Of a stretch of 64,000 nt of DNA, positions 1,911 through 5,448 are shown in pieces; position 1 is the stretch's first letter, and every line of letters starts with the position of its first letter. The stretch lies in the sequence record NC_027402.1, one strand, 5' to 3'. A program made the translations under genes and the position numbers. The notes beneath the pieces are model-generated. The model had not been told where the DNA came from. It ran no database searches and was given only the letters and a program-made list of their open reading frames with translations.

Positions 1911-2153
1911 ATGAATTTGTACTTGCTAGAACGAACTGACGATATCGGGTATGATGAATTTGATTCCATAATCGTGGCGGCTCCTACGGAGCAAGCTGCG
2001 TGTGCAATTCCTCCCGACTGTGGTCATTGGATGGACTGCCGCTGGTTACCGAAAGAGCGCTGGGATGAAGGGCTTACCCTGACCGTTACTCTTATCGGCA
2101 CTACGCACTATCCTGCTGGGACCGTCGTTCATGAATCGTTCAATGCTGGCTAA
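1911..2153 (+). CDS. Small acidic phage hypothetical protein (gp2)
   Basis: SD GGAG at 1901 favours the ATG at 1911 (MNLYLLERTDDIGYDEFDS). Confidence 0.75.
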   Translation: MNLYLLERTDDIGYDEFDSIIVAAPTEQAACAIPPDCGHWMDCRWLPKERWDEGLTLTVTLIGTTHYPAGTVVHESFNAG

Positions 2154-2173: not shown

Positions 2174-2339
2174 AACCCTATTCGAGCCATGATACTTACT
2201 CAGATTGTGCGGGTTGATGTCCCGCATGAGCCGGTAGCAGCTCAGACCTACGGTAAACCGATAAATCCGTAGCAGCCAGGTACACAAAGCACCAGGTCGC
2301 TTGTACAGGATGCTGGGTATCTGACCGGTCATAACCTCA

Positions 2340-2928
2340 TTCGATACGAGACACGTTTATGCATGAAATACTCCAGTACATCAGGATGTTGATTTCAAAC
2401 GTCCGGTTCTGGGTATTCAGTCATGTTTGGTTTACAGGCGATGGGTTTTCCCGTAAGGGCCCCACTTACAGACTGGCGTCTCCACGACAACCGTCCCTAG
2501 GGGACAGGCAAGCACCGGCCCATTAAGCCGCCATGCTACGCCTGTAAATCCACAATCTGATAACCGAATGGGATTGAGTTCCCAGTGTTAGGGTGACTGT
2601 GTGTCACCGTAGGCGCGGTACCTCATACGGCCGGTACGCCACGAATGTACGTGATAGCAGGTGGTGCTTGGAGACGCTAAGACCTGACCTTACGGCCAGG
2701 CTCAGAAGAAGAAGTCCATCACCTGTATTCAGAAATGAATTTAGGTTAATTATTGGAAGTGGCGAAATCACTTACGTGATAACTTAGTAGTATGCAACGA
2801 ACAATACCAGAGTGACTTTACGAGGTTACTGTGGTATATGTCGGTGCGCCGGGCAACGTGTTGCCGCAGATAAGCCCGAGGGAGCTGACTGCACTAACAC
2901 ACGCCGGGATGCACCGGCACCTTACAAC
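2340..2928 (+). ncRNA. Candidate large structured ncRNA
   Basis: No credible CDS; perfect 10-bp long-range stem 2431-2440/2539-2548 enclosing sub-hairpins; further hairpins; directly upstream of tRNA-like genes. Strand is inferred from neighbours. Confidence 0.4.
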
Positions 2929-2998
2929 GGCTTTGTAGCTCAGGTAGGTAGAGCAGCCTCTTTGAGGAAGGTCGCCGGTTCGAGACCGGTCAAAGCAA
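2929..2998 (+). tRNA. tRNA-like gene with truncated anticodon arm (3-nt TTT loop)
   Basis: GGCTTTG/CAAAGCA acceptor, TA-GCTC..GAGC D arm, AGGTC variable loop, GCCGG-TTCGAGA-CCGGT T arm; anticodon arm GCCTC-TTT-GAGGA is 4 nt short; no encoded CCA. Confidence 0.7.
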
Positions 2999-2999
2999 G

Positions 3000-3073
3000 A
3001 GCAGCGAAGTTAGAGGAATTAACACCCGACTCATAATCGGATATTTCGACGGTTCGAATCCGTCCGTTTGCTC
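3000..3073 (+). tRNA. Degenerate tRNA with CAT anticodon (Met or Ile2)
   Basis: D stem GTTA/TAAC, anticodon CCGA-CTCATAA-TCGG, T arm GACGG-TTCGAAT-CCGTC; bulged acceptor stem, A at position 8, no CCA directly after the discriminator. Confidence 0.7.
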
Positions 3074-3456
3074 GCCCCATTTGTGTTATCCTTATCCCGA
3101 AGGCATTCGAAATAAGACGCGTATCCACACACGGGTCAAGGGTAACACGAACCACTTCCGCGGTCACCGTGTCCATTGCCGCCTACCTGCATGGGCTGTC
3201 CTCCGACACGGTGACTTCGGGCCAACTTACAGGCCAGGGCCGTTTGGGTTTTTCTTACGCATCCATCCAGAGCCACCTCGCGCCCTAGTCTGTATACCCC
3301 TTTTCTGTTCCTGGTTTGCCAACTAAATCAATTAAGCCTGGTGCGTTGCCCTGGGAACAGAAAAACTTATTCGGTTACACACCGAACCCACCCACGAGGG
3401 ATATGTCGTGGACTACCAATAGAAGCAGCAATAGTAGAAGTAAGAAGGAAAGCAAC

Positions 3457-4278
3457 ATGTTTACAGTTAAACGTGTGATTGATGGTGACCGCATTATTAC
3501 CGAACATGAAAAAGTTCGTATCGGTGACCGTAAGTCTCGTGTATTCCGCGAGGCGTTAAAGATGCTCGAGAACGAGCGATTCGACATTGTTGTCGATGAT
3601 GATTTTTTAGCAGTTAATCCAGGATTAAAACGCGTCGCCGCCGACGTACCTGATCCGATTACAAAGCACCCGTCCGATTATTACAGTTGGGTGACTCGAA
3701 TGCAAGAAGATCAAAAATCGGGTCATCTGTATCTGAAACAGCTTTTCCCTAATCTTGTTATTCCCGACTTGGACGACATTGAGCTGTTTAACTGCAATGT
3801 GCGTGACTTTATCAGCTATGTGCTGGATGATAAAGGTACTGCTGTTCTGATACTGGACACGGGTTCACGTATACCCGATGCTGTGGATAACATTTGTGGT
3901 GAAATCGTTGGTTACGGTACACCCCCAGAGAAATTAGGTTGGTATAAACCGTCGCCTGACAGCGATATGAAGATTATTATCTACACCCAGGAAGAGCTGC
4001 AGCAAGTTGAATTGGAATCGGGACCAGTAATGGAGTTCACCGATGTCCAGGAGCAGTCTCAATGGGTTAATGGTGAATGCGTTGTTACTGTTTTAAAAGG
4101 CGCTCGCCCTGGCGACCGGTCAGTCGATGAACTGATTGGCGCAATGTGCATCGAAGAAGAATCTGGATACGATCCTGATAACCAGATCAGTACCGGTGCG
4201 TTGTACGAACTGTTTTATAAAGGCGACGAAGTCTACGTGGTTAACTCTCACGGTAAGACTACCGACGCCCTTCGCTGA
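3457..4278 (+). CDS. Hypothetical protein (gp4)
   Basis: Long ORF; AAGGA SD supports the ATG at 3457 (MFTVKRVIDGD) rather than 3316. Confidence 0.8.
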   Translation: MFTVKRVIDGDRIITEHEKVRIGDRKSRVFREALKMLENERFDIVVDDDFLAVNPGLKRVAADVPDPITKHPSDYYSWVTRMQEDQKSGHLYLKQLFPNLVIPDLDDIELFNCNVRDFISYVLDDKGTAVLILDTGSRIPDAVDNICGEIVGYGTPPEKLGWYKPSPDSDMKIIIYTQEELQQVELESGPVMEFTDVQEQSQWVNGECVVTVLKGARPGDRSVDELIGAMCIEEESGYDPDNQISTGALYELFYKGDEVYVVNSHGKTTDALR

Positions 4279-4500: not shown

Positions 4501-5448
4501 ATGTACAGACCAAGTAATCCTAGCGCTATTGAAGGATTAAACCAGGATGGCTTCAGCCTCGCAGAAGCAACCCGCATTCGACCTTTCTTACCTCGCAGAT
4601 TCTTCCCTTTCGGTTCGTTATACAGAACGAACTTCGACGCTTGGGAAGCGATACGTGCTGTAAAAGATGCACTACAGTACAAGAACTTCGAATTCCGATT
4701 TGTGTTCAAATGGGGCAACGGCGAATTGCTCCACTACTTCGGATTCCAACAGAACGAGTTTATTGAGTATACCTCACCTACGTACCACACCAGGTTCTTA
4801 AGTATCGAATTCGTTCGCCATTTCGGCGATGCACTCTTTACGGAACGGGCTACAGATGAAAACCACGGACGTAGGCTGATGTTAACGAACGGTGCATTGC
4901 GCATCAAGATGAATCGTTTACGGGAAGCGTATAACCAACTTATCAATCCTGAACCGGTAATGTTTCCAACAGTCGCAGATTTGAACGTTACACCACTCCA
5001 GCTACCTGTGGATATAGACAAACCGATCCTGGCAATCAGAGCACTGCAGGCAGGTTACGCAAACTGGTATAAAGGGCACAGTCTCCCGAACACCAGATTG
5101 AACATCGAACCGTATGAGTTGTGCCTGTTCTTAACGTTACGCAAACAGCTCGAGCCAGAAAACTTAGACTTACGTTATTTAGCGACTCCTGATGTTGGAA
5201 CCTATTATCCTGCGAATTGGATGGTTGCGGCAGTCCTACCGGACGGCGAGATGGTCGGTAGCATCGTTTATGGGACTCAACAATTACCTTCTCCGTTAGC
5301 ACCACCGAAGGATTCTATATATCCGTACGCTTCCTGGTACGTTGGCAGTAACGGAGCTAGATGGTTGGTACTCCACGTCCCTGAGGAAGTTTATAATTTG
5401 TTTCCACGTGAGCAATGGCTTAGCGTGTACGATTTTCAGTTTGGTTAG
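4501..5448 (+). CDS. Hypothetical protein (gp5)
   Basis: 315-aa ORF between a promoter motif and a terminator; no recognisable motif. Confidence 0.8.
   Translation: MYRPSNPSAIEGLNQDGFSLAEATRIRPFLPRRFFPFGSLYRTNFDAWEAIRAVKDALQYKNFEFRFVFKWGNGELLHYFGFQQNEFIEYTSPTYHTRFLSIEFVRHFGDALFTERATDENHGRRLMLTNGALRIKMNRLREAYNQLINPEPVMFPTVADLNVTPLQLPVDIDKPILAIRALQAGYANWYKGHSLPNTRLNIEPYELCLFLTLRKQLEPENLDLRYLATPDVGTYYPANWMVAAVLPDGEMVGSIVYGTQQLPSPLAPPKDSIYPYASWYVGSNGARWLVLHVPEEVYNLFPREQWLSVYDFQFG

Follow-up and report, generated by a model that had tools for sequence, protein, structure and literature searches.

A candidate three-domain structured RNA enclosing a small open reading frame in SPN3US-like jumbo phages

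The window analyzed here comprises bases 1-64000 of the Salmonella jumbo phage SPN3US (240,413 bp, genus Seoulvirus), with 100% identity. An AT-rich repeat region occurs at 100-215, close to the conventional left end of the genome, and the sole ARAGORN call in the window is a tRNA-Trp at 1771-1846. GenBank has no annotation between SPN3US_0002 (1911-2153, plus strand) and a feature labeled 'tRNA-OTHER' at 2933. A prediction made from the letters of this DNA had marked 2340-2928 as a candidate large phage ncRNA upstream of tRNA-like genes. In an alignment of the intergenic region from 15 phage genomes, conservation runs from about 2204 to 2733, and these limits define a conserved RNA element of ~530 nt on the plus strand, beside tRNA genes. 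The conserved unit starts 136 nt further upstream than predicted, leaving the first of its domains (D1, Table 1) outside the predicted span, and it stops ~195 nt sooner; the last ~195 nt of that span (2734-2928) are a separate unit with promoter-like motifs and a leader for the tRNA-like genes. What stands of the prediction is a large, conserved, structured RNA adjoining tRNAs, although not a purely non-coding one, as a 55-aa ORF lies inside it. Judged from comparative sequence data, the element at 2204-2733 is best read as a previously undescribed, three-domain structured RNA that is specific to SPN3US-like jumbo phages. No publication on it was found in the literature searched.

Similarity to the element was detected by blastn in about 60 phage genomes, namely those of 32 Salmonella, 2 Escherichia, 1 'Enterobacteria', 1 Proteus, and 23 Erwinia phages. 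No match came up when E. coli genomes were searched with blastn. The genera that carry it are Seoulvirus, Machinavirus, Erskinevirus, and Wellingtonvirus. With an nhmmer profile, the full unit of ~530-590 nt is recognized in each locus, with 55-82% identity to SPN3US in phages of other species, and nhmmer and covariance-model matches across the entire 530 nt were obtained for at least 20 loci in the four genera and for contigs from metagenomes and IMG/VR. When motif scans of these two sources were narrowed down with the profile and two covariance models, only members of the same clade were added, including Wellington and Kwan (genus Wellingtonvirus). A relaxed scan for motifs in metagenomes picked up 120 stretches, chance matches in nearly every case, with four true homologs. 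The element is present in one copy per genome. In the genomes of relatives that were examined, it always lies upstream, at the head of the tRNA array. Machina-like phages have a ParB-like gene between the element and the array, while in Asesino and Stratton a tRNA-Gly begins directly after the element. Where SPN3US has its tRNA-like genes, the arrays of relatives contain 5-11 intact tRNAs. The two tRNA-like genes of SPN3US are real, as predicted, but degenerate, with Rfam tRNA scores of 37.1 and 30.6 bits and no call by ARAGORN for either. Since the element is intact in SPN3US despite the decayed array, its function is unlikely to depend strictly on downstream tRNAs.

Table 1. Features of the element and of the stretch that follows it (window coordinates)
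Feature	Position	Strand	Remarks
D1	2204-2352	+	Domain
H1 (D1)	2205-2213/2221-2229	+	9-bp hairpin, 7-nt loop with consensus YUGRURU
H2 (D1)	2231-2235/2324-2328	+	Junction helix enclosing H3 and H5; weaker, 74% paired
H3 (D1)	2248-2253/2267-2272	+	Hairpin with conserved 13-nt loop
H5 (D1)	2277-2283/2317-2323	+	Carries bulge ACAAAGCA and hairpin H4
H4 (D1)	2292-2295/2313-2316	+	
Short 3' hairpin of D1		+	Shine-Dalgarno-like sequence before the ORF
Small ORF	2359-2526	+	55 aa; phrog_26199; unannotated in SPN3US
D2	2404-2588	+	Domain
D2 closing helix	2409-2419/2575-2585	+	Long-range
10-bp stem	2431-2440/2539-2548	+	Within the D2 closing helix
Enclosed D2 hairpins	2450-2459 (GNRA loop), 2470-2481, 2493-2505, 2511-2537	+	Small hairpins covary
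Motif ACAAUCUGA	2552-2560	+	Nearly invariant
D3	2579-2733	+	Domain
Hairpin f (D3)	2592-2608	+	GGUGAC, conserved loop UGUGU, GUCACC
Hairpin g (D3)	2612-2640	+	Swappable cassette
D3 long hairpin	2657-2726	+	After an A-rich joining strand; single copy in genome
D3 lower stem	about 2657-2669/2714-2726	+	13-16 bp
D3 internal loop		+	Near-invariant, purine-rich; GGAGRCG opposite AAGAAG
D3 upper stem-loop	about 2677-2706	+	
AT-rich spacer	from 2734	+	Conserved only within Seoulvirus
Seoulvirus-only hairpin	about 2758-2772	+	
TATG motifs	2791-2794, 2837-2840	+	TATATGT at 2835-2841
Conserved hairpin	about 2808-2835	+	
GGUGC...GCACC hairpin domain	2840-2920	+	Up to the first tRNA-like gene; in minimum-energy fold
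tRNA-like gene 1	2929-2998	+	Truncated anticodon loop
tRNA-like gene 2	3001-3072	+	

The fold of D1 and D3 was assessed by covariation in covariance-model alignments of 18 distinct sequences, a procedure in which the fitting to models itself favors the structure. In D1 (model R2, alignment A6), 97.2% of the cells of 26 pairs are paired, as compared with 35-45% for slid partners; 19 of the 26 pairs show compensatory change, none of 500 shuffles is as good, and the covariance model matches all 18 loci searched at 113-153 bits. The corresponding values for D3 (model R1, alignment A5) are 97.9% of cells over 32 pairs, 35-50% for slid partners, compensatory change in 16 of the 32 pairs, and again no shuffle in 500 as good, which brings the two domains together to 35 compensated pairs out of 58. 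Plain MAFFT alignments analyzed with RNAalifold give identical helices in D1 and D3 and identical compensatory counts. The original prediction had staked itself on covariation among homologs, and such covariation is clear in both domains. In the helices, G·U cells number 90 against 5 A·C cells, and reading the opposite strand would lower pairing to 87-91%, so that the functional strand is the plus strand. Compensatory pairs on one strand, the mark of a structured RNA, are therefore a property of this element.

Within D3, hairpin f is 97% paired, and five of its six pairs show compensatory change. Its neighbor, hairpin g, behaves as a cassette: the SPN3US version recurs near-unchanged in distant clades, while in further phages the same slot is filled by either of two other, unrelated hairpins, and the pattern of the three cassettes is incongruent with phylogeny. 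The cassette types other than that of SPN3US have zero Rfam matches. Large functional RNAs typically combine a conserved core with a modular periphery of this kind. The interior of D3 differs in Wellington and Kwan.

The architecture of D2 is less secure. Its closing helix appears in the independent minimum-energy folds of 14-16 of 17 homologs and is canonical in 15-17 of the 17, yet RNAalifold did not recover this long helix from a MAFFT alignment of D2, because the alignment shifts. Column-wise covariation lends D2 partial support. The 10-bp stem, found in only 11 of 18 sequences, is clade-specific, and the GNRA loop in the first of the enclosed hairpins is GUAA, GUGA, or GCAA across the family. 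The hairpins listed in the original prediction are present at or near the positions given for them. This applies to the 10-bp stem and to the CCC-GUAA-GGG (2450-2459) and GUCCC/GGGAC (2493-2505) hairpins of D2, to GGUGAC-UGUGU-GUCACC (hairpin f) in D3, and, beyond the element, to AGUG...CACU near 2758-2772 and the GGUGC...GCACC domain. A further one, GGGA-UUGAGU-UCCC (2570-2583), is present in the sequence, but a local hairpin is less likely there than use of the segment as the long-range 3' strand pairing with 2409-2419. Folding energy had also been put forward as a check. The originally predicted span, 2340-2928, does fold better than its dinucleotide shuffles (plus strand, z = -4.63, 0 of 100 as good; minus strand, z = -3.60), whereas the element proper, 2204-2733, reaches only z = -2.3 on the plus strand, with -3.7 on the minus strand. 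Thermodynamics alone is therefore not decisive; covariation is.

The same interval had been described as lacking any credible CDS, and this part of the prediction fails. The small ORF listed in Table 1 is conserved, with an aligned ATG, and is open in all 20 homologs checked, where it encodes 55-69 aa; the five alternative frames over its span contain 1-7 stops in nearly all homologs. When compared with phrog_26199, the SPN3US version matches at E = 7.6e-5 and the Machina version at 1e-49. The ORF is listed as a CDS in the annotations of Machina, Asesino, ChrisDB, and other Erwinia phages, and gene callers do not predict it in Seoulvirus genomes. The last small hairpin of D1 contains AGGUGA or GAG, which resembles a Shine-Dalgarno sequence, and the UAA stop (2524-2526) is invariant and sits within the apical loop of the last enclosed hairpin of D2. 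The N-terminal part, ~20 codons, encodes an amphipathic, hydrophobic helix, and one strand of D2 supplies the coding sequence of the C-terminal two thirds. By codon position, substitutions in the N-terminal part follow the order 3>1>>2 (e.g. 8, 2, 15), a trend that is clear only in the pEa_SNUABM_11/UViG clade. In the C-terminal part the codon positions are substituted equally, without bias, a pattern that fits a frame kept open while its nucleotides are dictated by D2. The micro-protein is charged as well as amphipathic, and a hydrophobic run of 20 residues is absent from it. A search of a 5.8-billion-protein database found no homolog of it, and a Pfam scan with five micro-protein homologs produced one sub-threshold match only. 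The UTR-like parts of the element are better conserved than the peptide. We infer that the ORF is translated.

Beyond the AT-rich spacer that follows D3, the GGUGC...GCACC domain is kept in Seoulvirus and in the Caitlin/ChrisDB group, with some compensatory pairs in an alignment of 7 sequences only, and in relatives it lies directly upstream of a tRNA-Tyr. The late promoters used by the non-virion RNA polymerase of phage phiKZ are defined by T(-3)ATG(+1) (PMC7598289), and in Machina-like phages the ParB-like gene is preceded by the same TATATATG motif, suitably spaced from the ribosome-binding site of that gene. On these grounds, the TATG at 2837-2840 is read as a probable promoter, and the domain at 2840-2920 is likely to be the 5' leader of the tRNA(-like) transcript. 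As a general promoter, TATATG finds no support in the window, where the motif is not enriched. Some Erwinia phages have a TATG promoter-like motif between D1 and the ORF, so D1 and D2-D3 could be separate transcripts there.

Evidence for transcription comes from two transcriptomic runs of a 98% relative, in which contigs cover 330-2675. These are assembled contigs, not reads, from libraries without strand assignment. Depth over the element is about 400-570, the level of neighboring genes and 50-200 times below that of the gene at 4501-5448, contig depth being a poor measure. Instead of the discrete transcript that the original prediction called for, the contigs place the element inside a longer transcript, at the level of its neighbors and not conspicuously abundant. 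In either run, the contig breaks off at 2674/2675 and passes into adapter sequence, and nothing is assembled for 2676-2782, a stretch that is absent from both transcriptomic runs and fully present in DNA runs. Position 2675 falls in the invariant internal loop of D3, between GGAGAC and GCUAAG. Letters 16-23 of the adapter are the exact reverse complement of window positions 2677-2684, so this end could be a library artifact. Both strands of the D3 stem covary, which implies that the complete hairpin is transcribed and that an end at 2675 would be post-transcriptional. The contig end suggests RNA processing at 2675.

All 4227 models of Rfam 15 were scanned at the gathering threshold and, permissively, at E<=10, with queries of 2201 nt and 556 nt. 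No family matches within the element, the only models to pass their gathering thresholds being those of tRNA, outside 2204-2733; Rfam scans of the ChrisDB and pEa_SNUABM_11 homologs likewise gave no match. The prediction had reported no resemblance to tmRNA, RNase P, or group I/II introns, and the 4227 models agree, for GOLLD and ROOL as well. As a tmRNA, the element is rejected by ARAGORN, which with permuted forms included finds none in the window, and by the silence of the Rfam tmRNA models. A group I or II intron is excluded by contigs that run unspliced across the element and by Asesino, in which a CDS ends ~16 nt before it and an intact tRNA-Gly begins directly after it. An insertion of 257 nt in relatives, considered as an intron of the element, lies at 2930, outside it, and has no Rfam match. 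An array of tRNA genes or pseudogenes does not apply either, given that there is no tRNA match within 2204-2733 and that relatives with 5-11 intact tRNAs have the element too. Two likenesses, one between GAAGAAGUCC and the CR-I motif of RNase P and one between AGAAGUC and loop A of the hairpin ribozyme, were discarded along with those to tmRNA and group I/II introns, because the order and the structure disagree and none of the models gives a score. Short identical words shared with 5S rRNA are specific to SPN3US and fall inside covarying stems, and are regarded as coincidental. A CCCTAT motif was unsupported by pattern search. In our view, the element falls outside the known classes of ribozymes and riboswitches.

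Two comparisons with known families deserve separate mention. Like GOLLD and ROOL, the element is large (>500 nt), elaborately folded, supported by covariation, phage-borne, and found beside tRNA genes, as those RNAs frequently are. It differs from them in having no Rfam sequence or structure match, in being limited to one clade of Enterobacterales jumbo phages, in holding a conserved ORF, and in not being conspicuously abundant in the one data set examined. Hairpins f and g score 22 bits against RF03132, the L17 ribosomal-protein leader (gathering threshold 34.9 bits, E = 0.95), and no other family did better on the element in the permissive scans. Both consist of two adjacent hairpins, and the loop of the second is identical to the consensus at 18 of 20 positions. 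Membership was rejected on account of the threshold and of a location that is intergenic in a phage rather than upstream of rplQ; hairpin g, moreover, is an exchangeable cassette that is missing from many homologs. The ligand of the L17 leader is itself predicted only (PMC7247131).

The interpretation that we favor, by somewhat better than an even chance, is a new bifunctional RNA that unites a conserved fold with a micro-ORF, serves as a scaffold or regulator at the RNA level, and is probably processed in D3. According to this scheme, the left-end operon would be transcribed rightward to yield the element RNA, and the ORF in the middle of the element would be translated into a micro-protein of 55 aa, while the helices that flank and overlap it, and the invariant loops, would be under stronger selection than the peptide. 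Processing would probably occur near 2675, within the invariant internal loop of the D3 hairpin, and in relatives with a directly adjoining tRNA, the 3' side of the element would be set by 5' processing of that tRNA. Equipped with exchangeable peripheral hairpins, the RNA could then serve as a scaffold that binds proteins or exerts regulation, perhaps in concert with the basic micro-protein that it would encode, and would presumably act in trans. RNAIII of Staphylococcus aureus has ~500 nt and many hairpins and encodes a short amphipathic peptide, its RNA being more constrained than the peptide. The element shares with it the combination of a structured RNA and a short, in this case putative, amphipathic peptide, of which the RNA is the more constrained part. 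The two are not homologous, the ORF of the element overlaps conserved helices instead of lying between them, and the setting is a phage, not a cell.

A highly structured mRNA, which would act in cis, is a rather unlikely explanation. D1 would be the 5' UTR and D2/D3 the 3' part, the Shine-Dalgarno sequence would be held in the last hairpin of D1, and the folds would gate translation or stability of the micro-protein by a logic of the hok type. In hok-type (type I toxin) mRNAs, a small membrane-active peptide is under the control of long-range pairing and of trimming at the 3' end, and the element resembles them in its small ORF within a long conserved folded mRNA, its long-range pairing, and its possible 3' trimming. 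The conserved ATG and Shine-Dalgarno-like sequence, the frame open in 20 of 20 homologs, and the amphipathic, hydrophobic helix of the N-terminal part speak for such an mRNA, as do the pairing by the D2 helix of coding sequence with sequence past the stop codon and an apparent 3' truncation that falls about 50 nt short of where the conserved hairpin ends. Nevertheless, a multi-junction fold of >350 nt with invariant loops, much larger than that of hok-type mRNAs, exceeds what known cis-regulators need for 55 codons, and the UTR-like parts outdo the peptide in conservation. The peptide, in addition, has no 20-residue hydrophobic or transmembrane segment, and in a lytic phage there is no obvious role for an addiction module.

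Alternatively, the element could be a module for RNA processing or punctuation centered on D3, possibly a new self-cleaving ribozyme, a reading that we consider unlikely. Cleavage at 2675, by the RNA itself, RNase III, or a phage nuclease, would part the transcript of the left-end operon from the tRNA transcription unit. The contigs of two runs do stop at 2674/2675, in the most invariant loop of the family, with 2676-2782 unassembled, and the covariation of both strands of the D3 stem means that the full hairpin is made before any cut. The element, too, stands at a transcription-unit boundary in every genome examined. RNase III sites of the R1.1 type in phage T7 have the form stem / internal loop / stem, a form that D3 shares, as it shares the position at such a boundary and an RNA end, here an apparent one, in the loop. 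D3 differs from the T7 hairpins in that its sequence does not vary between genera, a constancy not needed in RNase III sites, in that it is one of three domains, and in that its cleavage is only putative. The end was seen in assembled contigs lacking strand assignment, next to the adapter complementarity noted above; Rfam scans reveal no match to any known self-cleaving class; the interior of D3 is different in Wellington and Kwan; and a processing module leaves D1, D2, and the ORF unexplained.

Bolder, and quite unlikely in our estimate, is a new class of large phage RNP or ribozyme that would be cleaved site-specifically at 2675, in the invariant internal loop of D3, and would then engage the host translation or tRNA machinery during infection, along with its basic micro-protein and its cassettes. 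Such a class could include self-catalyzed cleavage at 2675; one of the cassettes resembles the L17 binding site.

Very improbable is a known RNA in disguise (RNase P, tmRNA, a group I/II intron, GOLLD, or ROOL) or a set of decayed tRNA genes. The position adjoining tRNAs, the GNRA tetraloops and multi-helix junctions, the internal ORF with its stop codon in a hairpin loop as in tmRNA, and the superficial likeness of GAAGAAGUCC to the CR-I motif would suit it, yet no Rfam model scores at E<=10 with the 556-nt query, ARAGORN finds no tmRNA, the RNA contigs have no splice joint, the gap of ~16 nt from the upstream CDS to the element in Asesino is too small for an exon or a tRNA half, and relatives with intact tRNA arrays carry the element also. 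Just as improbable is a DNA-level element (a replication origin, packaging site, or protein-binding array) whose palindromes mimic RNA hairpins, which could draw on the proximity of the conventional left genome end and the AT-rich repeats at 100-215 and on the similar folding z-scores of the two strands, but is contradicted by 90 G·U against 5 A·C cells, sensible only for plus-strand RNA, by compensatory changes that keep pairing rather than sequence, and by transcription of the region.

Large, intricately folded RNAs are rare, and most of those that are understood are ribozymes or the cores of ribonucleoproteins; new classes of them have repeatedly opened new biology. The bifunctional RNA preferred here would add a new RNA family with covariation support in jumbo phages that form a nucleus, a group in which RNA biology has hardly been explored. 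Its unusual traits are a micro-ORF woven into the fold, hairpin cassettes swapped between lineages, and a candidate processing site in an invariant loop, and its hosts are genetically tractable model phages (SPN3US in Salmonella and the phages of Erwinia amylovora). For annotation, the element means a correction to about 60 genomes and the addition of a missing small gene in Seoulvirus, and the two covariance models, R1 and R2, could seed an Rfam family. In SPN3US itself, the tRNA-like genes are overlapped by the annotated CDS SPN3US_0003, probably a spurious one.

One slot in the RNA, occupied by hairpin g and found again at homologous positions in relatives, carries any of three hairpin cassettes that are unrelated to each other. 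The cassette types cut across genera (pSal-SNUABM-04 versus Machina, Asesino versus Stratton, and UViG23 versus UViG27), a distribution that implies that an RNA module has been swapped by recombination at this site. Upstream of the element, a GUGGGC-UUCG-GCCCAC hairpin lies directly 3' of the SPN3US_0002 stop codon and is also kept in SPAsTU and pEa_SNUABM_29. This hairpin may terminate the upstream transcript or stabilise its 3' end; in that case the element itself would start a short way downstream of it.

Features in the window and in loci of relatives (L002, L008 and L017, each in its own coordinates)
Feature	Window	Relatives
AT-rich stretch	~100-215	
3' hairpin of SPN3US_0002	2154-2176	
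Cassette slot	2612-2640	L008 ~1695-1730; L017 ~1735-1790
tRNA-like genes	2929-3072	
Insertion	at 2930	L002 2232-2488
SPN3US_0003	2940-3176 (- strand)	
Second stretch without annotated genes	3073-3456	
Diverged segment in SPN3US_0004	3602-3901	
SPN3US_0005	4501-5448	

In many close relatives, including Proteus phage 7, the SPFM phages and SPLA1a, among others, an insertion of ~257-261 nt separates the leader hairpin from the first tRNA-like gene, precisely at their junction, and has no match to any Rfam family or tRNA model. The annotated CDS SPN3US_0003, antisense over both tRNA-like genes, is probably a spurious gene call; most relatives have no such annotation. Immediately 3' of the tRNA-like genes is a second stretch, of ~380 nt, that lacks annotated genes. 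Since relatives hold further tRNAs (Asn and others) in the matching interval, this stretch may be a decayed tRNA array in SPN3US.

In the two transcriptomic runs of a 98% relative, SPN3US_0005 has a contig word depth of 17,000-82,000, versus ~100-570 in its neighbours; it is among the most highly expressed loci of this data set. Within SPN3US_0004, the same relative has a segment of equal length and diverged sequence, a local mosaic replacement.

The left end of SPN3US is without annotation as far as 1185. Near the genome start, an AT-rich stretch (GC 0.34) with many repeats and palindromes is flanked by GC-rich GCGTGCGCG palindromes. In a relative, RNA-seq contigs have an abrupt start, preceded by adapter sequence, at position 330.
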